From Setoptus koraiensis (Eukaryota; Animalia; Arthropoda), in the NCBI GenBank assembly GCA_048013815.1, contig CM106585.1, positions 5,704,001 through 5,768,000 of the forward strand: DNA of 64,000 bases, written 5' to 3'. Under the pieces are notes generated by a model. It saw only the letters and a list, made by a program, of their open reading frames with translations, did no database searches and had not been told where the DNA came from. Numbering within the stretch: the stretch's first letter is position 1; each line of letters starts with the position of its first letter. Position numbers and translations under genes: made by a program. Below are positions 3,508 to 64,000 of the stretch, one piece after another.

Positions 3508-5244
<1,737 letters not shown>

Positions 5245-9735: not shown

Positions 9736-12700
9736 ATGAAAAAGAGACTTGAGTCCAAAGCAGACAACGCCGGTGATAGTGGCGGTCAGAATGACCCGAA
9801 CTCGCCGGGACAATCGCTGTCCTCTGCATTCATCCAATCTATCATAAACAACAGCGGCGTAGCCAAGACAAGCCACACAATACAATCAGGAGGCCCCTCC
9901 GGAGACAAAGAATCTCATCGGCAGCATGATGAACTGAAGTGGAATATAACAAACTCTGCACAAAATATAGTATCTGCTCTGGTGGATCCTAGCAAGCAGT
10001 ATGACTATGCTTTCCGTCGAGAATGGAGCAATACGTTCTCGTCAGGACCGTCCGGAATACCATCAAGTAAACTACTGAAATCAGCTTCGATGGCCAAAAG
10101 AGATGCAGAACTAAGAAGCAAACTGCGAGACTATCTAACTAAACTAGAGGAGAGAAGAATTATTAAACAGAAAGAGCTTCAAGACAAATTGTCTCAAGAA
10201 GATCAAATCCCGTCTAATCTGCCAGAAAATCATAGTAAATCTAGATCAGGCATCAAAAAAGTGCCAGATTTGTTCATGCACGATCAATTAGACTTATCAG
10301 ATTCGAAAACGTTTACAGCTATATTTGATCTACTGGTCCAAGACGTGCCTAAGAATTCGGAATCACAAAGTGAGCACACAAAAGATATCAATTCATCTAC
10401 AACATACAATAAATATACTTTCAATAAATTTCAGCTCAGACAGCTTCAAAAACAATTCACCGATTATCTGGATGCAATAGAGGAGAATCTAGCCGGACAG
10501 ATTAGTAATAGATCTGGAGACTTCTTTCAAGTTATGTCCTCGGTGGATTCTGTTATGGACGAAGTTTCCCTCGCTATTAAGAGTGTAACCAGCCTTAGGA
10601 AGAAATGTGCCACACTAAACAATGCTTTAATTCTACCAAATCTTCGGAATATACAATTGACTAAATCACGCAATAATGCTAACGAAGTATTGGTTAGGTT
10701 GAATAATATAGAAACCTTGTGCAGAGTGCAATCTAAAATACAGCTACTGTTATCGTCCTCAGATTTTGTTGGAGCACTAAATTTAATCGCAAAGTCACGA
10801 AGAATACTAGAAAATGAGCTTGTCGGCGTCGTTTGCCTCAGACACCTTGAATCTCAATTAAATGAAATAGAGAGAGTGATAGGAACCATGATGCAACAAG
10901 AATTTATAACTCTTATAACATCTGAGTGGAATCGACCTGTTCCGCCCACCCAAAATGGATACGCAATAGATCCTGATAATAATAGTAATGAGGCAAAACT
11001 CTTTGAACATGAACGTGTGCTTTCCATCGTCCAAGGTATGATAAGAATAAATAGATTGAATTTCGGGGAATATTTTCTACAAGAGGCCAGAATAGCGATT
11101 AGCACTTGTGTGAAACAAACTCTTATAGAGTTTTTGTCAGACGAAGATGATTGCATTGGCAGTGATGACAAAGTATCCCATGATGTTTACAAAACGGTCC
11201 AACTTATCAACTATACGAAATGGGTTGCCATGATAAAGATAGTATTTATTAATTTATTGTCCATACTAAAACGCATCAAGATAGTTTACAAGGTTATATT
11301 AAGTTCACTGGAGCAAGTAGAATCCTATTTATCAGATGGAAACAAATCAACTGTCACAGATTCGATCGCATTCCCGACTTCAGAAGAGGTGATAATTCCA
11401 GAGATCTTTCAAATGATTGATGCAGATGTTAAACAGAGTACTTTGAGCAGTGTCAGACAAGGCAAAAACGGACTCTCAACATCTTTTCAAGCAGTGTGCA
11501 ATTTCGCTAAACACTTGACAGTTAACTTAATAGAATGCCGCATAAAAGAGAGCAACTTTGATAAACTTTTGGCCACTGAATTTATCAATCTATCGAAATT
11601 GATAGAAGATTTTACTCGCGTCTTTTCGGACATATGTGATCGAGATCAACTGATTCTACGTTCTTTGTTGCAAACTCAAGCAGACAAATTTGTCAATAAA
11701 TTCCATGATGAACGCACTAAGAGAATTAAGTCTAATCTAGATATTGAGCAATGGAGAATGGTCGAAGAGATACCCGAGGATTTTCAACAATTAATCACCA
11801 ACATTGTCGATGATGGTATTCCATTGTGGCAATGTCTGGAGGCAGATAAGATCAAGGAGTATCAGCAACAGCAGTCTGGTAAGACCATCAAAGGTTCGTC
11901 GACACATGCCAATAATGATGTTAAAGATGTCTGTGATGTCCAACAACGAAAGAGTGAATTGCCCAAACAGGAGCAGGCCCAGAAAAAATCCGGCCGCTCA
12001 TCTGTGTTGGCCAACAAACAAAATTACGTGATAGTTAATTCTGCTATAAATCTCATAAGGACAATACTAGACTATTGCCGATGCGCTAATGATATTAAAT
12101 TTTTAAGCTCAGAGATTTTGGCTAGGCTATTCGAATTGTTACATCTGTACAATTCGACTACATATCAATTAGCTTCGTCATATTTACGCGCTGGGACACT
12201 TCAAGTGGGCGGATTGAAGACGATCACAGCAAGGAATTTGATTGTATCTCAGCGGAGTCTCAAGTTGATACTACTAGTTTTGCCATCTATACTTCAGCAT
12301 TTCGAAAGGCTTCTACCAGAGGACCATTGCTCAATGTTGAAACGTTTCGACGAGATCAGTCTGACGTTCAGAGATCACGCCGGAAAAATACCCGAACGTA
12401 TTACATCGAGAGTGAAGAACGTGATCAATAAATCGCTAGATATGTGGGAACCTAAACCGCCTGTACCATCGCCCCAGTTTTGTGCCGTATCTCAGCATCT
12501 CATGATGTTACATGACAATATCCAGGACGCTATGCCACATGATGATTTGAAGGAACTGTTCACAAAGATACACAAGACATTCAAGGACGTTCTAAGAAGC
12601 CATTTGATACGGCTGAGAATAGCCAATGATTCTGGGCCCCAGCAATGGTTGGTGACGCAAGAGCTGGCGTTTTACAAGATGAATGCCGCAAAATTAGCTG

Positions 12701-12783
12701 TTTTTAAATCGATGGATCTTGATTTTGATGACCTTTGGTCTAAATTGGATGCAGCACAGAATATTGGCCACAATGTGAGCTAG
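9736..12783 (+). CDS. VPS54: Vacuolar protein sorting-associated protein 54 (GARP complex subunit), intronless, 1015 aa
   Basis: LQKQFTDYLDAIEENLAGQISNRSGDFFQVM, GLKTITARNL and DSGPQQWLVTQELAFY match remembered Vps54 motifs. Confidence 0.92.
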   Translation: MKKRLESKADNAGDSGGQNDPNSPGQSLSSAFIQSIINNSGVAKTSHTIQSGGPSGDKESHRQHDELKWNITNSAQNIVSALVDPSKQYDYAFRREWSNTFSSGPSGIPSSKLLKSASMAKRDAELRSKLRDYLTKLEERRIIKQKELQDKLSQEDQIPSNLPENHSKSRSGIKKVPDLFMHDQLDLSDSKTFTAIFDLLVQDVPKNSESQSEHTKDINSSTTYNKYTFNKFQLRQLQKQFTDYLDAIEENLAGQISNRSGDFFQVMSSVDSVMDEVSLAIKSVTSLRKKCATLNNALILPNLRNIQLTKSRNNANEVLVRLNNIETLCRVQSKIQLLLSSSDFVGALNLIAKSRRILENELVGVVCLRHLESQLNEIERVIGTMMQQEFITLITSEWNRPVPPTQNGYAIDPDNNSNEAKLFEHERVLSIVQGMIRINRLNFGEYFLQEARIAISTCVKQTLIEFLSDEDDCIGSDDKVSHDVYKTVQLINYTKWVAMIKIVFINLLSILKRIKIVYKVILSSLEQVESYLSDGNKSTVTDSIAFPTSEEVIIPEIFQMIDADVKQSTLSSVRQGKNGLSTSFQAVCNFAKHLTVNLIECRIKESNFDKLLATEFINLSKLIEDFTRVFSDICDRDQLILRSLLQTQADKFVNKFHDERTKRIKSNLDIEQWRMVEEIPEDFQQLITNIVDDGIPLWQCLEADKIKEYQQQQSGKTIKGSSTHANNDVKDVCDVQQRKSELPKQEQAQKKSGRSSVLANKQNYVIVNSAINLIRTILDYCRCANDIKFLSSEILARLFELLHLYNSTTYQLASSYLRAGTLQVGGLKTITARNLIVSQRSLKLILLVLPSILQHFERLLPEDHCSMLKRFDEISLTFRDHAGKIPERITSRVKNVINKSLDMWEPKPPVPSPQFCAVSQHLMMLHDNIQDAMPHDDLKELFTKIHKTFKDVLRSHLIRLRIANDSGPQQWLVTQELAFYKMNAAKLAVFKSMDLDFDDLWSKLDAAQNIGHNVS

Positions 12784-19972: not shown

Positions 19973-21460
19973 TTAAGCAGAGGACGAGGTCGACGACGAC
20001 GACGACGATGAGAATAGCGATGATGAGAAATTTGTTGGCGAGGCCGGCAACGAGTTGGAGGATGAGGACGACGACGAGGCCAACGACGACGATGTGTGGT
20101 CAGTGATGATGGACGACGGTTGTTTGTTGACGTTGACGGACGAGCCAACCAACGACGATACGTGATGATGGTGATTGTGATGATTGTGATGATTATGGTG
20201 ATTGTGATGATTGTGATGCTGCTGCTGAAGCTTGCTGTGATGGCTAGATGAATGATTCAAATGATGGCTAATGACATGATGGGCGCCTAATTGGTGTTGC
20301 ATGGGAAGCTGATGAAGATGATGATGATTGTGATGATTGTTGGTCATGTTGTTGACGGCGGCTATGCTGTTGGCGGCGTTAATTAAGGTATTATGATGAT
20401 AACTATTGTTCATTTGGGTCGATTGGTTTGTCGGAGAGCCGGCGTTGCTGCTGGCGCCACTTGCGGGCGCACCGTGGCCCGTGGACAGGCTGCCGCTACC
20501 GGACAGGCCGTTGCTGGACAGGCCGTTGCTGGACAGGTGAGCCAGGTTGCCTGTTGGGGCCTTGCTAGAGTTGTTGATGTTGTTGCCGTTAGTTGTTGTT
20601 GTTGTGGTCGAGTTGTCCAAACCGTTGACCGCTTGGCCGACATTGATCGGATTCAGGGCGCTCAGCTGATGGCCGACGGCGCCCAGCTTGTTGACGGCCG
20701 ACATGACGACATGATGGTCGTGCAGCAGAACCTGATCCACGTCCCCATCAACGTCGTGCAAATTTCCCGACGACGAGTGGTGGCCGTGCGACGAGTCCGA
20801 AGACGACGACGAGTCACTATTGTCAAATGAGTGCACCGACGAGTGGGTCAGCAACGAAGCGGACAGTGTCGACATGAGCGTCTTCTTTGAATTTTCACTA
20901 TTGTGTATAAAATGACACCGTGGACCGTACGGACAAAATCCGGTTGTGTGAAAGGTGCGACAAAATTCAGTCTTGTATTTGGGGTGTCGGGCGAGCGTTC
21001 TGAGCTCGTTGATGCCGTGCGCAAATTGACATTTTTCGCCGTATTTGCAGCAGCCGTTTTCCTCGAAGGGCCGACACAGCTCAGTCTTGTATCTGGATGA
21101 ATTTTGTTGCTGCTGTTGCTGTTGTTGTTGCTGGCTGTTTGTTTGCTGGCCAGCGGACGGCTGCTGCTGCTGCTGCTGCGAAATGGGTATCGCCGGCGAC
21201 GATTTCGGGGGCGACTGTAGGTGGTTGTGACTTTGGTTGTTTGCTTGTTGCGCGCCGCCGCTCTTGTTGTGACTCTGCTGTTGGCCGGCCAGCGGTTGTT
21301 GGTCGTGCTGCTGCTGGTGCTGGTGAGAGTGGTGCTGGTGCGGGTGGTGGCGATGGTGGTCGGCCGTTTGCTGTTGGTGCAACAGGCCCGCGCCCGCCGG
21401 ATGGTGCCCGGCCGAGTGGTGCAAGTGGCTGAGCAGGTGGTGCAAGCTGGACATTGTCAT
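19973..21460 (-). CDS. Tis11: Tis11/ZFP36 (tristetraprolin-family) tandem CCCH zinc-finger ARE-binding protein, about 495 aa, with polyQ/H/S tracts
   Basis: [26 protein letters not shown]...[26 protein letters not shown] (two C-x8-C-x5-C-x3-H fingers with the YKTE lead-ins). The first ATG is at 21460; the listed ORF start at 21625 is a TTG. Confidence 0.95.
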
Positions 21461-21554
21461 GGTGCTGGCCGCTGGGTGCTGCCGATGGCGGTTGGTCGAC
21501 TGGTCAGTTGGTCGATCGTTCACGTTCGGTTGGTGGATCTTTGAGTTGGTCGAA

Positions 21555-21910
21555 TGTTCAATTGATCGAATGTTCAATATGTCGATTGTTCGATAGGTCG
21601 ATTGTTCAATAGGTCGATTGTTCAATATGTCGATTGGCTATTTGGTCGATTGTTCAGTTGGTCGATTGGCTATTTGGCTGATTGGGTGGTCACCGGTTGC
21701 TGTGGGACCGCTATGGGCTGGCTGTGACTGGACTGACTGACGTAACTGGCGTATAACTGGCGTATAACTGGCATATAACTGGCATATAACTGATAACGTG
21801 TAACTGATATAGGGGGCGCGATTGTGGGTTGCGCCGGCCGCTGGTGCGACTGGGGCCGATAAACTGAGACTGGGGCCGACAAACTGAGACGGGCGCCGAT
21901 AAACTGGGGC
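21555..21910. repeat. Stacked short tandem repeats upstream of Tis11: a GGTCGATTGTTCAAT-like unit, an 11-mer TATAACTGGC(G/A), and a 20-mer ACTGGGGCCGATAAACTGAG x3 (21849-21908)
   Basis: Directly visible. Confidence 0.8.
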
Positions 21911-33346: not shown

Positions 33347-34495
33347 ATGAGCTTGTTGGCAAGGAAAGTTATCAATTGGGCCATGCCGCTCAGTTTTATT
33401 CTTGGTGGTATCGTCGTCAACTTGTTACAAATTGTTATATTTCTATTTGTCAAACCAATTAGTAAGCCGTTATTTCGCACAATCAACCACTATCTACAAT
33501 ACTCAACATGGTCTCAAACAGTTGCAGTCGCTGATTGGGGCTCCAACATCAACCTTAGGGTATGGCTCGCCGACGAGGAATCACACAGAGACTTCGGGGC
33601 ACGCACCGGTCTGGTTATCATGAATCATCGTTACGATCTCGATTGGCTGACCGCTTGGATGTATGCCGATAAAATAGGCACGCTGGGCGCCGATAAGGCA
33701 CTTGTGAAGGCCTCGTTGCGTTACATACCCGTCGTTGGCTGGGGCTGGGCCATCAGTGACATGATCTTCTTGCATCGTGACTGGAAAAAAGATAAGGAGA
33801 GCCTCCAAAAAACAATGGACGAGATTCTACAGCATCCCAGATCGCTTATATTATCCTTTTTGGAGGGCACACGCTTCACAAAAACCAAGTACGAGAATAG
33901 TGTGAAATTTGCAAAGGAAAAGAATCTCCCCATATTGAGACACCATCTATTGCCTAGAACGCGCGGGTTCATTTCAATGATGACGCACGTCATTGAGAGC
34001 AAGGCCAAAAACAAAGACTTAAAGTTTGATGTATTCAGCATGCAAGTTGCATTTACTGAGGACGAAACCAGTAAGGCCAATCTGCCGTCCGTGCTAAGTT
34101 GTGAAAAGGTCACAATATATGTCTATGTTAAAAAATTGAGCATGGACAATATCGATCTTAGCGATGAGAATTCCCTTTCCGATTATCTCTACAACGTCTA
34201 TAAAGACAAGGATGAGCTCATGGAATATTTCAAGAAACATGGCCGCTTTCCGGGAATTGAGAAACCCTACAGGCGCAGGCTCGCCTCCTTGTTAAACTGG
34301 ATAGCCTGGTTTTTCCTAACTTACACGTCCCTATTTTACGGTTTATATAAAGTTTTCTCTTCTGGTAACACCGTTTTGATGGTTTGCGTTGCAACACTTA
34401 TTTTAGCAGCTCTTACAGGTGTAGTCGTGCTTATCAATTCGACTAAAGTCAGTAAATCATCTTCATATGGGGTTACTGGCAAGAAGTCTAAATGA
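33347..34495 (+). CDS. Agpat3: 1-acyl-sn-glycerol-3-phosphate acyltransferase (AGPAT3/4-like), intronless, 382 aa
   Basis: NHRYDLD (HX4D), IFLHRDW, FLEGTRF, LPRTRGF, C-terminal TM helices and a dilysine KKSK ER-retrieval end. Confidence 0.93.
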   Translation: MSLLARKVINWAMPLSFILGGIVVNLLQIVIFLFVKPISKPLFRTINHYLQYSTWSQTVAVADWGSNINLRVWLADEESHRDFGARTGLVIMNHRYDLDWLTAWMYADKIGTLGADKALVKASLRYIPVVGWGWAISDMIFLHRDWKKDKESLQKTMDEILQHPRSLILSFLEGTRFTKTKYENSVKFAKEKNLPILRHHLLPRTRGFISMMTHVIESKAKNKDLKFDVFSMQVAFTEDETSKANLPSVLSCEKVTIYVYVKKLSMDNIDLSDENSLSDYLYNVYKDKDELMEYFKKHGRFPGIEKPYRRRLASLLNWIAWFFLTYTSLFYGLYKVFSSGNTVLMVCVATLILAALTGVVVLINSTKVSKSSSYGVTGKKSK

Positions 34496-57161: not shown

Positions 57162-60075
57162 CTATTGGATAATCGTCTCGCCATTCTCGTTGATTTGTGT
57201 CGGATTTAGGGTCCCAAAATTTGGTAATTGGGCGCACCAGTATGAGCACGTCTGCGAGCCAATTCCGCAATTCGCGGGTGCAACCGCGGTGCGTTTAGTC
57301 ATAGCGACAGTCTTGGCGCAACCGCGGCAACTCACAGATTGTTCACAATTGTCAGATCAAGATTGACGTTAGAGGCTGATTGTTGCCAGACTCTGGCAGC
57401 CAGAGATCTTGTCAGAGCTCTTGTCAGTGGGAGATTGTCACAACGAGAGCGCCAACTGGCGCCCTGCCGATTGAGTAGTGAACCAGAAGAGGGCGTCTCG
57501 TGAATTGAGTCGCTCACTGACACATCAACACTGACACACAAAAGTGTATCATCGTATGGTACTGCTCGAGTCTCGCCAATAGGGGCGCTATTTTCAGTTG
57601 TTTCACAAGTGTGTCAGTTGTCAGTTGGCTCGCCACAAGTGCCACATTGGCCACTCTGACAGAGTGACTCTGTGACACAGAGTCTATGTTTGTCTTGCGT
57701 TGAACAGCAAACAACAACAACGACAATATCGTGGCGAGATATCATCAAATCACATTGGCTCATGTGGCGTCTGCCCAGCAAACACAATCAATCTCGAATC
57801 AATACTGCACCGATAAGCACTGTCGCTAATGGCACTAATTGGGTGACAACTTGCGCCGCGACAAATTAGCGCCGATTGATAGAGATTGATTGACAAATTG
57901 TGAGTGAGTCGACAACGAAAACAAACCTGTACTTCGTCGTGCTCGCACACACAAGCCCGTTGTTACTAACAACTTGTTACTCATCGTGGTCCATGATTCA
58001 TGGAGACGTCGGCGGCGGCAGATATCGGCTCTCGATGGAGATATCGGCCGTCGATGGCGACACCAGCGAGCGCCTTCAACGACATTGTTGTTGTTACAAC
58101 AATGATCATACGCAGAGTCATCAACTTGCGTCGCCGATATCAATACACTTGTCGAGTGGCAGCGATTAGCGCCAGTAAACAGGCGGCCGAGACATTCCGA
58201 GATTCAACACAATTCATTCAGTTTTCAGTGCCATTCTCACTCGCTCGCCGTCCCAATCCGTCACGCTCGATCGCACCACAGCTCACCGAGACCCACAGTA
58301 ACCGGCCGAGACCCACAGACGAACCAACTGGCCGAGACCCACAGACCCATCGCGAGACCCATCGACACACGACAAGGGATATCCCCGGACCACAAGCCAC
58401 ACATACAGCGCCACAGGACATAGCGGTAACAAGCACGCATTCGTACAACAATGTCGGAAAAGGCAACCCTGTTGCCCACAGGTGAGTGACAAACAAACCA
58501 AACCAAACTGACCAAGCAACCGTATACGCACTAGCGACTAATCAGCTGACTAATTAACAATGTAACAACAACAACAAATGTAAACACGACAATTACGCAC
58601 CACAATCAGTGGTGGACGCCAGCGGCACCCAACTGCACTCGGCCTCGTATTATCCGCCGCCCACCGGTGTCCGGCTGGTTATCGTGCCCGGCTTAGAATT
58701 TGACGCCAGGCGCCGCTCCAATTATGGCTACACGTCCCTGCTGGCCGCCCTGCTCACATTCCTCAGCTGGCTGATAATAGAATCGCGAAGCTGCTACTAC
58801 GGACCAGGATTGAATTTTGACCGGTTGCAGAGTCTGCACATAGCGCTCATGATATTCGCTTTCACAATATTTTTATTGAGTCTGTTCAGTATGGCCGACT
58901 ATTTGTTTCAATTTCGCATTCCGTTCCTGTGCACCGTGCTCATAATGTACGCCGCCGCTGGCCTCATGGTGTGGGCCGTGTACCAGGCCGCCGTCAGTCC
59001 GTGCATGTCGTTCCCGATTCCCAACACCCCTCTGGATATTTATCCCAACAAGTCCAATGTGTTTAAGGCGGGCGACGGCTTCGGAATATCCATCCTGCTG
59101 GTCGATATTGTGGCCGCCGTGCTGCTCGTTTCGGCCGCCTCCAGCTTTTACTACCGCTACTGACCGCTACTGACCGCTACCTGGACGCCGCCGCTACCCC
59201 TATTCGGTGGGACCAAATTGAACCAAATATGCGATGGGACAATCGTCCAAACACCACACACTCGGGCCATGCTAATATTGTCGCCTCACACACCACACAT
59301 ACATCACACAGTGACACAGCGCTTCAACAGTGTAACGATTACACACAATAAAGACAGACATTGCATCACAACACCATTACATCACAACCGAGCGAGTGGT
59401 CAGCCCAGCACGAGCGGCGTCTGGTTGCTCACCTGTTCCAAGCATTGCGTTATTATGCAAAACGCCTGCGTCGTGTTTATGTATTGCGTAACGGCCGATA
59501 TGCCCGTGCACCTGAGCAGCGTGTTGTCGAACAGGTTCTTGTTGCAGTACACGCACTGGCTGGCCAGTGGGGCGCCCTGCTGGTCGCCGGGCTGGTAGCA
59601 GAATCTGCCCGCGCCCGCGCCGTCGCGTCCCGTTACGTCCCGTTTCGTGAGTTTTGATGGTTTTTGTCGGTTGTTTGTCGGTTTTTGTCGGTTTTTGTCG
59701 TTTTTTGTCGGTTGTTTGTCAGTTTTTGTCGTTTTGGGGGTTCCCGCAAAGTAAAAAAAAGTACAAACAGTCAAAATTGTGTGTGTGTGCGTTAGAACTG
59801 GAGTTGCGTTAGCGGGATTATAATGTGATTAGCGGGCCACAGTGGGCGCCGAAGATTCTCTCAAGACGATCACAGAATCTGTGACACAGATCGATCTAAA
59901 TGGCTCACCTCATCTGAACGGGACGCTCGGCCATCAGCAGGCCGGCGATTGTTTTGCTCGATGCAACGAAACGGCCACCTGTTGTTGCCATGTCCAGCGC
60001 CATTAGTGACGTAATCGCCAGTGCTAATCGCAACGCCAGCGTTATCGTTTTTCTGTTCGTTACAAACAGAGACAT
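57162..60075 (-). CDS. Secreted 8-Cys small protein, 3 exons (60075-59909, 59604-59433, 57251-57162), 142 aa
   Basis: Hydrophobic N-terminus (ITLALRLALAITSLMAL). Both donors read AG|GTGAGC (59908, 59432), and both acceptors are CAG (59605, 57252). Phases 2 and 0 match. Exon 2 is GC3-rich. Product: ...RFCYQPGDQQGAPLASQCVYCNKNLFDNTLLRCTGISAVTQYINTTQAFCIITQCLEQ|TCSYWCAQLPNFGTLNPTQINENGETIIQ*. Exon 3 is the least certain. Confidence 0.65.
58451..59163 (+). CDS. Four-transmembrane protein (MARVEL/tetraspan-like topology), 2 exons (58451-58481, 58610-59163), 194 aa
   Basis: ATG in a good context (ACAATG), donor G|GTGAGT at 58482, branch-like GACTAAT sites and CAG at 58609. Four hydrophobic segments, one Cys in each predicted outer loop, GC3-rich codons. 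Confidence 0.8.
59655..59730. repeat. Decamer repeat GTTTTTGTCG-like in intron 1 of the secreted gene
   Basis: Directly visible. Confidence 0.8.
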
Positions 60076-61490
60076 TGTTGCCACACTAACTCTGTGACTG
60101 GGCTAATCTGGGCTGTTCAGCAATAGCGGCGAACGTTGGCGGCGATTGTTTGCGGCGAATAATTGCGGCAAATAATTGCGGCGAAAACTGCGGCGAAAAT
60201 TGTGCGACCAATTGGGGTCAGTTTGTCCAGTCGGGCGGTGGTCCTCGGTCCTCGATGCTATGGGATATTATGACGATGCTCCAATTCGACGTAATGACCT
60301 ACTCAGTGGATGAAACTCTTTTTGCGTCTGACTGACTTTCGCTGGCCACTGCAGCTCGCGATCTCGCTTTGCGATGGTCGGCAGTCGTTAACGCTAAAGC
60401 AACTGCCATTTTGCATGCGACCATGAACCAACTTTGACATTGATAGATTATCCTGTAACCGTATAGCACGAGTGCCCGCCAGCTAGTCAGCTCCCGAAAA
60501 CGCGATCGCAACAACAATGTGTTCTCGGCAAAGATCACATTCGAGCCACATGACGAGCGATACACATTTTGTTGATTTATTTTGCATTAACCTGTTGCGA
60601 TTTTCTATAGAAATTGGATCCAGATTTGGATGGAACAGTCATGATGGGCATAACCGGTCTATCACGAAACATCGAAAGCGGTGAAACATCGGACGATCAA
60701 AACAACGAAAACTTAATACACATCCAAAAGCCATCAGAACAACGAATGGCCTCTTCATGAATGATTGAATGATAAAACAACGAATGATCGAAACAACTAA
60801 CGCCGAATCAGAGATCTCCATAGACGAATTGGGGACCACGGTCGGGTTCTGTTCATCCTTGCCTTCGTTGGAAAGAGCATTCGTTGGAATGCCTTGAGTT
60901 GTTATGACCTCTCGTTGAAATGATTGATTAGTTGTTTAAGCATTAGTTAGAATTAGTTGTTTTGTAATTTCGATGTCGTTGTAATCGATGTAACGTTGTT
61001 ATGAGCGATTCGGTGTCGGTGCATTCGACGTTTGCACTATATATGGGGCATAACATCTTAATTGTTCAATGATAACGAAGGCCGAGATATGACAAAAAAT
61101 GTTCTTGCAAGAGTCGAGCCAAATTTTGAAGGTGAACTGCTGAAATCCTCAACTTGCAAGGGAGGCTCCCGAGATGATCTGTGAGTCAGATCTGAAAGCG
61201 AGTGTATCGGTTAAATAGAACTCGCCTCCCTCAACAGGGAAACAACTGTCTTTTCTCCAAAAGTTCATGAAAATTCCCCAAAAACAAAAAAAAACGGGGA
61301 AAAGACAGGTGTTTCCCTGTGTACATGTGTTTGTGATTGAAATTGTCTTTCAAAGGAATTCAAGAAAAAGTCTACCAGCGGACACCCTTTATAATATAGT
61401 ATTATCACGCATATCAAGGTCTATCCATGTCATCCATGTAAACAACAGTGTTACAACAGTTTCATGAATTTATTAACGAAATTGTAAACA

Positions 61491-63680
61491 ATGGACCCAT
61501 TCGACATGCTGCCGGCGGAGCTGTTGATCAAGATCATCAGTCACTTGGACGACTTACTCGATAGGCACAATTTGGCCCAACTATCACCTAGATTTAGAGA
61601 TATTATACATGCTGGCAACATGATTTTGGAGAGAGGAACTCTCGGTAGCACGCGGTCGGAGTTGCTAGATTGTCAGGTTTTGAGCACTATCCTTCAAGGG
61701 CTGCCCCAAATGAAACAGCTCGACCTGGGCAACGCAATCAGAAGATTTGGACCGGGCTCTCATTTCTATGTGACGGACAACTGCCAACGACTAACCAGAC
61801 TCAACTTAAGTCGGATATCTTTTGCAGCCACAGAGCTAAATTCTGTAATAGTTGATTTAGAACACTTGACACATCTCACACTGGATCATATCGAGCTAGA
61901 CGATTTATATGAGTTGAACGAAGTGATTCCGAATCTTTCGCGAAATCTGTTGCATCTCAGCATGATAGGAATTAAACGAAGACCCTTTATATATTTTCCC
62001 AGCATGGATAACGAAGTTTACGCGTTGCGTTCCCTCGATATCAGGAGGAATACCATTGTTGATGATTTTGAACCCGAGGCTGGGGATTTAGGCGATACAA
62101 CATTTTTTATCGAGGCATGTCGGCAATTGGACAGCCTAGCATTGACGTTGAAAGGCGAGGAATCGGTGCCTGAATTGATACGTACTCTTTCCAATATCCG
62201 ATTGAGAACTCTTGTTCTTGATCAATATTACGGCTCGTTGGCAGGTATTAACGTACCAACAATAATAAGCGGCGAACAAGCTGAATCACATTATGAAAAG
62301 AGCACTAACCGTGCGAAAAAACCTGCAAAGATTTCCTGTCACAAAGAGATACGTGATTTGGAGGATACCGTATCGTCAATATACAATAACTACTGGCTAC
62401 TAGAGTGCCAACAAAAAATATCCATTATACGATGGAAGCGAGAATCTCGAAAAGGTAAACATTTTCTATTTGCGAAGATAGATCGCCAAACTCTAGATGA
62501 ATCATTTGCAAGGAAAATTCATCATTCCAACAAGTTGAGAATGGTTGAATACGATAGAGCAGGTGGTAGACTGTTGTGGTCAGCCGAAGCTGTACCTATG
62601 CCTCATTTCATCAATTGCAGGCGATTTTTATATTTCAAAATCAATAGGGATAACAAACAAGAATTTAAACGCGGCCGACCGAAATCAGGCAAATATTTGT
62701 TGATCAACAAGAGTCTCAAGAAATTCTATCAGGAATCAATTGAGAGACTGAAACGAAATTTAAGACGAATCGAGGACGATGCATTCTTGCGTGAAATTAT
62801 CCAGAAAAGTGGTCAAGAGGGACAAGTCCTATGTAACTTGCAATCTAATAACGCGCTGAGATTGGAGGAAGGTAGTTTCGGCAGTCGGTTACCGGATGAC
62901 ATCAAATCGTCAATAAGACGAAGAATTTCGCTCATGGTCACTCCACCTGAGGAAGAGTTTGACCGGAGGAAGTCTATCGTGTTTTTAGCAAATTTTTTAT
63001 TTCGGACTATAGCAGATTTCAATTTGATGCTTCCTAGTTCAAAAGTATTAATATGTGCTGGTAGCGCTAAAACACTCGAGGCAATCGCAGAGAAAATCCA
63101 CGAAGTGAGAGCGTCGAATGAGTGTAGAATTAATGTGAAAATATTCAGCTCCAACTCCCGTCCTCAACGACCATCTTCTTCCTATGTTAATGATCTCATT
63201 GATGAACATATTGCTGACGATGATGCTATTGTTGATGATGATGATATTTACGAGGACGTCAATGTCGAAAATTCCAGAATCGATACCAGAGACCTGAAAG
63301 TTGATTCGGGACTGGGCATGCTGGCTGCAAGACAGATCTTGGATAACTTGGATAATTCTGATTGGTGTGATGTGATTTTATGCACTTTTCAAGATGCACT
63401 CAAGTTGTCGGCGTGGACTGGGTTGTTAATTGATACTCTGATACTTTACGAATGTAACGAGTTCAGTATGAAAGAGCTACATCTCTTACTCCATTTCCTA
63501 CCCAGACGAACAGTATTGATGTCCATCAGTCCCTGGATCAAGAGTGACCCCGTATTTCGGAAATTCCAGAAAATGGGCTTCACAAGAGACTTCAACTGGT
63601 TGAGACCCCCAGATTTCTATCGATCCGACAATAGGTGCTTCGCGCGGAAATCAGCATCCGTGTATCCGCCACCAAGATGA
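61491..63680 (+). CDS. F-box/LRR protein fused to a degenerate Upf1-like SF1 helicase 1B+RecA1 module, intronless, 729 aa
   Basis: N-terminal F-box (FDMLPAELLIKIISHLD...NLAQLSPRFRDII) and LxxLxL LRR-like repeats (MKQLDL, LTRLNL, LTHLTL, LRSLDI, LDSLAL, LRTLVL). The C-terminal segment aligns by eye with Upf1 motifs (KVLICAGSAKTLEAIAEKIH, DVILCT, ILYE, FYR). Confidence 0.85.
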   Translation: MDPFDMLPAELLIKIISHLDDLLDRHNLAQLSPRFRDIIHAGNMILERGTLGSTRSELLDCQVLSTILQGLPQMKQLDLGNAIRRFGPGSHFYVTDNCQRLTRLNLSRISFAATELNSVIVDLEHLTHLTLDHIELDDLYELNEVIPNLSRNLLHLSMIGIKRRPFIYFPSMDNEVYALRSLDIRRNTIVDDFEPEAGDLGDTTFFIEACRQLDSLALTLKGEESVPELIRTLSNIRLRTLVLDQYYGSLAGINVPTIISGEQAESHYEKSTNRAKKPAKISCHKEIRDLEDTVSSIYNNYWLLECQQKISIIRWKRESRKGKHFLFAKIDRQTLDESFARKIHHSNKLRMVEYDRAGGRLLWSAEAVPMPHFINCRRFLYFKINRDNKQEFKRGRPKSGKYLLINKSLKKFYQESIERLKRNLRRIEDDAFLREIIQKSGQEGQVLCNLQSNNALRLEEGSFGSRLPDDIKSSIRRRISLMVTPPEEEFDRRKSIVFLANFLFRTIADFNLMLPSSKVLICAGSAKTLEAIAEKIHEVRASNECRINVKIFSSNSRPQRPSSSYVNDLIDEHIADDDAIVDDDDIYEDVNVENSRIDTRDLKVDSGLGMLAARQILDNLDNSDWCDVILCTFQDALKLSAWTGLLIDTLILYECNEFSMKELHLLLHFLPRRTVLMSISPWIKSDPVFRKFQKMGFTRDFNWLRPPDFYRSDNRCFARKSASVYPPPR

Positions 63681-63694
63681 TGTGAATAGGTGAT

Positions 63695-63829
63695 GTATTG
63701 TTGTCCATCGGTCCGTGGATTTCGAAGATTCCAGAGAATGGGCTTCCAGCTAGTCGGTTGAGAGCCCCAGCTTTCCGTAGAGCCGGCATGCCAGTTGCGC
63801 GGACCCACTGCCTAAGATGGTGTAAATAG
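63695..63829 (+). pseudogene. Diverged, frameshifted tandem duplicate of the last ~175 bp of the F-box gene (source 63513-63689)
   Basis: GTATTGTTGTCCATCGGTCCGTGGAT vs GTATTGATGTCCATCAGTCCCTGGAT; GATTCCAGAGAATGGGCTTC vs AATTCCAGAAAATGGGCTTC; GGTTGAGAGCCCCAG vs GGTTGAGACCCCCAG; AAGATGGTGTAAATAG vs AAGATGATGTGAATAG. Confidence 0.75.
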
Positions 63830-64000
63830 CGAAGGGATATGAATATAGGGATATGAATAGCTCGGGATGGATGAATGGCCAGGGGCTTCGTTTGATCCGC
63901 ACTCACCTGAAGCTGGCTGCCACAGGTGAAATTGATTGGCTTTTCCTCTAATCGCTCGCCAATTACTGGTTTGCACAAAGTGCTGTTTTGCGCCACTGTG

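Follow-up and report, generated by a model that had tools for sequence, protein, structure and literature searches.

A 64,000-nucleotide stretch of the genome of the arthropod Setoptus koraiensis (GenBank assembly GCA_048013815.1, contig CM106585.1, positions 5,704,001 to 5,768,000 of the forward strand; hereafter the window, whose own numbering is used throughout) contains at 61491-63680, on the plus strand, a gene for a protein of 729 amino acids (aa) in which an F-box and leucine-rich repeats (LRRs) are joined in a single open reading frame (ORF) to a truncated and, to judge from its motifs, catalytically dead module of the UPF1 type. This combination had been proposed in an earlier note made from the letters of the sequence alone, and it is borne out by the intact ORF, Pfam, profile searches, a structural model and an alignment with UPF1 orthologues (alignment A4). 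The region 61491-63680 is a real, transcribed, single-exon gene that belongs to a lineage-restricted multi-copy family. The explanation that we favour, with moderate confidence, is that its product is a substrate receptor of a Skp1-Cul1-F-box (SCF) ubiquitin ligase with a composite, passive recognition module made of LRRs and pseudo-helicase, and that it comes from a fast-evolving multi-copy family. In the protein, the F-box (aa 5-45) is followed by the LRRs (aa 46-245), a linker, and a UPF1-type stalk, 1B barrel and RecA1 domain (aa 284-700).

A transcribed single-exon gene

The ORF is intronless and intact, with 729 codons followed by a stop codon, and at the local base composition (about 43% G+C) the probability that 729 stop-free codons arise by chance is about 2e-20. 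The encoded protein begins with MDPFDMLP, and its F-box starts at residue 5. Since an in-frame TAA precedes the ATG at 61491 by one codon (3 nt), the N-terminus must be as read, without a signal peptide. A look-up of the exact 729-aa product matched no annotated gene.

Four sequencing runs were compared with positions 58001-64000 of the window. One of them, the RNA-type run X7, skips a canonical 128-nt GTGAGT..CAG intron in a neighbouring gene, joining a clean ORF, and is therefore RNA-derived. Contig pieces from X7 cover the span 61378-63923 on the plus strand (61378-61702, 61684-61896, 62280-62470, 63004-63167 and 63283-63923) with zero or one difference each; none is spliced, the last runs collinear through the stop codon, and the depth of X7 across the intergenic region 59401-61200 is zero. 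In an independent Logan assembly, of run X1, one contig spans 61554-63219 with zero differences.

Three other readings of the locus were rejected. A fusion created by assembly or annotation, which the earlier note had named as a risk, is contradicted by the difference-free X1 contig and by the recurrence of the same architecture in relatives. Splicing to a downstream exon encoding the second RecA domain (RecA2) does not agree with the collinear X7 contig or with the relatives, which end at the same place. A transposon-borne gene was likewise discarded: read depth in the flanks is that of single-copy DNA, and the gene is not enclosed by terminal repeats.

An F-box followed by leucine-rich repeats

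The F-box (aa 5-45; 61503-61625, plus strand) was recognised by the Pfam profiles PF00646 and PF12937 and by Foldseek matches to SKP2 and FBXL2. PF00646 matches aa 5-40 with an E-value of 3.3e-4; its score of 20.9 bits just passes the cut-off of 20.5, and PF12937, at 23.5 bits, stays slightly short of its own cut-off of 24.3. The F-boxes of the relatives outscore this one in Pfam. Residues L7, P8, I16, D24 and L28 are invariant across the family, even in relatives only about 25% identical. The profile match thus places the protein among the F-box proteins, the substrate receptors of SCF ligases, and predicts its assembly with Skp1 and Cul1.

The LRR domain (aa 46-245; 61626-62225, plus strand) is supported by the periodicity of the model and by Foldseek. 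About six repeats had been read by eye; their presence was corroborated by both methods, and the number has to be raised to about seven or eight. In sequence the repeats stay below the Pfam threshold (LRR_4, 17 bits), and in the predicted model they appear as eight strands set at even intervals from aa 48 to 244, with a regular alternation of strand and helix. In the full-length model the predicted local distance difference test (pLDDT) values are 80-89 over aa 20-140. In Foldseek, the N-terminal half of this model (aa ~3-300) matched SKP2, FBXL2, COI1 and TIR1 at E-values of 1e-6 to 1e-4. The modelled LRR solenoid behind the F-box assigns the protein to the FBXL subclass. The solenoid is followed by a low-confidence linker (aa 246-283; 62226-62339, plus strand), with pLDDT below 50 over aa 242-291.

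A UPF1-like half-helicase

The helicase-like part begins at aa 284 (nt 62340), and not near 62700 where it had first been placed. It opens with a UPF1-type stalk helix, 1B beta-barrel and return helix (aa 284-428; 62340-62774, plus strand; pLDDT about 90), and continues with a RecA1-like (1A) domain devoid of ATPase motifs (aa 475-700; 62913-63590, plus strand), which was identified by family profile, Foldseek and motif alignment. The first of these segments was delimited by alignment to the 1B region of UPF1 and to P0008, a relative described below. Taken alone, the query sequence matched no helicase family in Pfam, AAA_11 not being reached, and no PDB chain in phmmer searches; its homology to UPF1 was shown through relatives.

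These relatives were found in an exhaustive phmmer search over 1.84 billion cluster representatives, which yielded nine matches. P0002, P0003, P0006 and P0007 (670-723 aa) combine an F-box, LRRs and AAA_11, the last above the Pfam cut-off in three of the four. P0004 (298 aa) is a protein of F-box and LRRs only, P0001 and P0005 are short pieces that share 56% identity with the query, and P0009 is a long, unrelated LRR protein. P0008 (824 aa; L004 892-3366, run SRR33593474) is a complete helicase with AAA_11 and AAA_12; its N-terminus forms a hydrophobic helix, it lacks an F-box, and none was found upstream of it in its contig. All relatives are unannotated and occur only in the Logan assemblies of SRR33593474 (P0002 to P0008) and SRR18067581 (P0001); a literature search for these two accessions gave no result. 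A word-index homology search was blank for the whole protein and for the family alignment A3, and since P0002 and its kin sit in that very collection, these blanks are uninformative.

The query by itself aligns over aa 296-681 to P0008, a full helicase of superfamily 1B (SF1B), with an E-value of 8.7e-10 in phmmer, and the nearest named proteins to P0008 are all UPF1 orthologues (31-33% identity). A profile (A2) built exclusively from half-helicase members of the family, with no complete helicase included, was then compared with the PDB: human UPF1 was matched at 9.4e-18, over a stretch that begins in the LNxSQ region and extends to where RecA1 ends, followed by yeast Nam7 at about 1e-12 and Sen1 at 7e-7, and no other match was convincing.

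Structure prediction agrees with this assignment. A full-length AlphaFold model computed from family rows only, of mediocre confidence (pLDDT 59.8), retrieved UPF1 first in Foldseek (E 1e-9), then ZNFX1, IGHMBP2 and Sen1. A model of the C-terminal part (aa 284-729) from a 40-row alignment reached a pLDDT of 78.8 and a predicted template modelling score (pTM) of 0.76; UPF1 again ranked first (E 7e-13), and VIA-align superposed model residues 1-428 on residues 300-700/726 of human UPF1 with Z of 16-17. In the known structure of the UPF1 helicase core, this part comprises the stalk, 1B, RecA1 and 1C. The earlier note had named UPF1, SETX, MOV10, ZNFX1 and AAA_11 as the matches that would support it: UPF1 did come first and ZNFX1 was among the matches, and AAA_11 was reached in the relatives and not by the sequence itself. 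The module therefore has a RecA1 fold, a 1B barrel and a stalk homologous to those of UPF1, which makes it a UPF1-like SF1B module.

Loss of the ATPase motifs and the question of RNA binding

Motif states were read from the MAFFT alignment A4 with true UPF1 orthologues, which reproduced the mapping of Walker A, DVILCT, motif II, motif III and VFRKFQKMG onto UPF1 made earlier by eye. Walker A is destroyed (aa 484-495; 62940-62975, plus strand), reading TPPEEEFDRRKS where UPF1 has GPPGTGKT. The motif Ia region (63045-63104, plus strand; VLICAGSA..IAEKIHE) had been called well kept; it is recognisable, but only in part, since VLICAGSA has lost the Pro and Asn of the VLVCAPSN of UPF1. An unnamed motif is DVILCT here versus DVICCT in UPF1. 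Motif II (63438-63461, plus strand) is degenerate, with LILYECNE instead of LIDESTQ, the Asp being changed to Tyr so that YE replaces the Walker B DE. A family-specific LPRR motif, formed by L670, P671, R672 and R673 and unchanged in every family member and in P0008 too, precedes the lost motif III (63498-63536, plus strand, for the two together), where SISPW replaces GDHCQL (TVLMSISPWI here, LILVGDHCQL in UPF1). At the end of RecA1, VFRKFQKMGF corresponds to LFERLVVLGI of UPF1, as had been suggested, and the further pairing of FYR with QYR is uncertain. In sum, neither the Walker A GxxxxGK(T/S), nor the Walker B DE, nor the motif III GDxxQL is kept at the aligned positions.

Whole domains are missing as well. 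The predicted absence of RecA2 was confirmed: the ORF ends 29 aa past RecA1, no AAA_12 match (motifs IV-VI) was found in Pfam, X7 reads through the stop codon, and the relatives share the boundary. The 1C insert is reduced to an acidic, probably disordered remnant (aa 556-623; 63156-63359, plus strand; net charge -12, pLDDT below 50), a stretch that is deleted in the relative L002. The CH zinc-knuckle domain (PF09416), which binds UPF2, was found in all the UPF1 orthologues compared and neither in this protein nor in its relatives. With all ATPase elements, the folded 1C and RecA2 lost, the module is predicted to be unable to bind or hydrolyse ATP or to translocate in the manner of UPF1.

The charge of the remaining parts is unusual. 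Stalk and 1B (62340-62774) carry a net charge of +18, with an isoelectric point (pI) of 10.3, versus a median net charge of -6 in 31 UPF1 orthologues. Across the family the net charge of 1B ranges from -10 to +18 (-10 to +6 in the other members) and is not conserved. As a separate observation, this copy shows an extreme contrast between the +18 of stalk and 1B and the -12 of the 1C remnant.

These features bear on whether the pseudo-helicase could bind RNA or ribonucleoproteins (RNPs), or mimic UPF1 as a decoy, and thereby direct an SCF ligase at RNPs of nonsense-mediated decay (NMD), of the PIWI-interacting RNA (piRNA) pathway or of antiviral defence. The derivation of the module from an RNA helicase and the strongly basic stalk and 1B of this copy speak for such a role, as does the presence in the ESM Atlas of clusters joining F-box/LRR to an RNA-recognition motif (RRM), which indicates that F-box/LRR and an RNA-binding domain do occur in one protein. 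However, solved UPF1-RNA complexes show that UPF1 holds RNA in a channel made jointly by RecA1, RecA2, 1B and 1C, and in this protein RecA2 is missing, an acidic loop modelled with low confidence stands in for 1C, and motif Ia is without its Pro and Asn, so that clamping of RNA in the UPF1 manner is unlikely. The variation of the 1B charge among members and the lack of a CH domain for UPF2 also argue against an RNA or RNP target, and we consider this alternative rather unlikely.

Family history and the possibility of a relic

A maximum-likelihood tree of the stalk-to-RecA1 region was built from seven half-helicases, P0008 and 31 canonical UPF1s. In it the half-helicases cluster together (98/85 support) and divide into two subfamilies, and P0008 is placed between this group and the tight clade of the 31 canonical UPF1s. 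The branches are very long, including the one that separates the half-helicases from canonical UPF1s. Because both subfamilies are present in SRR33593474, the half-helicase design predates the divergence of that organism from this one. UPF1 proper is the likely ancestor. P0008 itself reads GPPGTGVT in Walker A, with Lys changed to Val, and NE for DE, and is probably ATPase-dead too.

The closest relative is L002, the contig behind P0001 in run SRR18067581 (39-58% identity); L001 falls in the same subfamily but is more distant. Region 200-2191 of L002 is a pseudogene: one frameshift lies within the F-box and another near nt 590-602, a stop codon interrupts the frame, and the 1C remnant is deleted. 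The copy studied here is itself one of the more degenerate members of the family, with 1C lost.

Directly behind its stop codon, in the 3' untranslated region, lies a decayed tandem duplicate of the last ~40 codons of the ORF (63695-63788, plus strand), composed of three blocks 79-89% identical to 63513-63630. The blocks are spaced at 182, 165 and 158 nt from their originals, and these length shifts of 17 and 7 nt break the frame; the duplicate falls inside the X7 contig 63283-63923 and hence in the transcribed 3' region. In addition, the DNA runs contain further contigs that match stretches of the ORF at 85-95% identity and represent recent paralogues. Their listed differences from it, a rough and non-random sample (n=32), comprise 14 synonymous and 18 non-synonymous changes, with more synonymous ones than neutrality gives.

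Could the gene then be a functionless relic, a paralogue of some full-length F-box/LRR-helicase gene that has been truncated and is decaying, its frame still open and its transcription continuing although selection has ceased? The loss of every catalytic motif and of 1C would fit such a fate, as would the decayed duplicate behind the stop, the pseudogene as nearest relative and the multi-copy nature of a family with such similar extra contigs. Yet the 729 codons have remained open in DNA of 43% G+C, the gene is transcribed, and the paralogue differences show a synonymous excess. Moreover, half-helicase relatives of another organism, only about 25% identical, stop at the same RecA1/RecA2 boundary and keep the invariant F-box and LPRR residues. 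Taking both sides together, we judge a relic to be decidedly unlikely.

Proposed function

If the gene encodes an SCF substrate receptor, as we favour, the F-box would dock the protein on Skp1-Cul1, and the LRR solenoid and the pseudo-helicase would together offer a passive surface for substrate recognition. The substrate would more probably be a protein than RNA. The gene would then belong to a rapidly evolving group of SCF substrate receptors, in which each copy may have a specificity of its own.

Several points weigh against this explanation. The F-box score is only marginally over the Pfam cut-off, and the pseudogene state of L002, the closest relative, indicates that copies do die. The X7 contigs come in pieces and leave 61897-62279 uncovered, so that the continuity of the transcript rests on the ORF. 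The alignment behind the C-terminal model held UPF1 rows, which biased that model towards UPF1, although the full-length model from family rows only also put UPF1 first. Finally, the tree contained no outgroup helicases, so a sister SF1B clade remains an alternative ancestor.

A role outside protein degradation or outside the SCF complex was also weighed, in which the protein would sequester Skp1, or act without ubiquitination as a scaffold or inhibitor of the P0008-type helicases of this lineage. F-box proteins with SCF-independent roles are known, and full-length P0008 has neither the Lys of Walker A nor the Asp of Walker B, which suggests a whole clade of non-enzymatic proteins with a helicase fold. 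The conserved core of the F-box argues, on the other hand, that docking to Skp1 matters, and we regard such a role as very improbable.

Neighbouring genes in the window

The neighbouring gene at 58451-59400 contains the 128-nt GTGAGT..CAG intron (about 58482-58609) that is spliced out in X7; its spliced ORF begins MSEKATLLPT/VVDASG and encodes about 190 aa. Elsewhere in the window there are long single-exon housekeeping genes at 3508-4596 (minus strand), 9736-12783 (plus strand), 19973-21625 (minus strand) and 33347-34495 (plus strand), for enolase, Vps54, a CCCH zinc-finger protein and an acyltransferase. The best solved relative of the enolase is 5wro, the enzyme of Drosophila being the most alike among PDB entries, followed by those of human and lobster. 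Together these housekeeping genes point to a compact, arthropod-like genome.

Comparison with known systems

A literature search found no description of an F-box joined to a UPF1-like module, and shape searches of AFDB and the ESM Atlas found no clear protein with both halves. For the exact combination, the claim that no protein of this architecture has been described agrees with the papers searched; the pairing of an F-box with a helicase as such is already known from FBH1 (PMC12946210). One AFDB representative, I3EIJ7 (1229 aa, 'Helicase ATP-binding domain-containing protein'), was aligned to aa 5-696 of the query (E 7e-9) with a template modelling (TM) score of 0.15, and may be another case of an LRR-like region joined to an SF1 helicase.

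FBH1/FBXO18, an F-box protein with a C-terminal SF1 helicase that acts as an SCF ligase (PMC12946210, PMC2294136), is the nearest published architecture that we found. It differs in having a complete, active DNA helicase of the UvrD type (SF1A) and no LRRs, whereas the module described here is SF1B, half-length and dead. Neither the PDB profile search nor the structure comparisons returned UvrD or FBH1 chains, the best matches being the SF1B proteins UPF1, Sen1, ZNFX1 and IGHMBP2.

Each half of the protein has its own closest counterparts. With the FBXL receptors SKP2, FBXL2 and TIR1/COI1 it shares an N-terminal F-box followed by an LRR solenoid, but those receptors lack a helicase-derived C-terminal module, and there is no sequence-level orthology to the named FBXLs. 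With UPF1/Nam7 it shares a homologous stalk, 1B barrel and RecA1, UPF1 being the best match in both PDB-profile and structure searches; unlike UPF1, it has no CH domain, folded 1C, RecA2, Walker A, Walker B Asp or motif III.

Two further systems resemble it more loosely. The SSGP-71 effectors of the Hessian fly are a large, fast-diverging family of F-box and LRR proteins in an arthropod (PMC4617103, PMC7330099) and parallel the expansion and divergence seen here, but they have a signal peptide and no helicase module, whereas this protein starts directly at the F-box. In the ESM Atlas, the shapes closest to the full-length model are EEED8.10-like clusters, which likewise join F-box/LRR to a domain from the RNA world; the added domain there is an RRM, and the TM score is only 0.35, due mostly to the shared LRR part.

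A bolder possibility, which we consider unlikely, is that the family represents a new class of SCF receptors in which a UPF1-derived pseudo-helicase, with a strongly basic 1B barrel in this copy, would bind RNA, RNPs or factors that associate with UPF1, coupling ubiquitination to RNA surveillance or to antiviral and anti-transposon defence in a rapidly diversifying family driven by conflict. Recognition of RNPs or of UPF1 partners would make the pseudo-helicase a direct link between a cullin ligase and RNA surveillance. If it serves only as a protein-binding scaffold, it would still show clearly how a birth-and-death family can turn the fold of an enzyme into an adaptor surface. F-box proteins acquire targets by exchanging their C-terminal recognition domain. 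In this case one half of an inactive RNA helicase has been taken up in that position, which gives a variant on the established plan of F-box receptors, with a recognition domain of a new kind.

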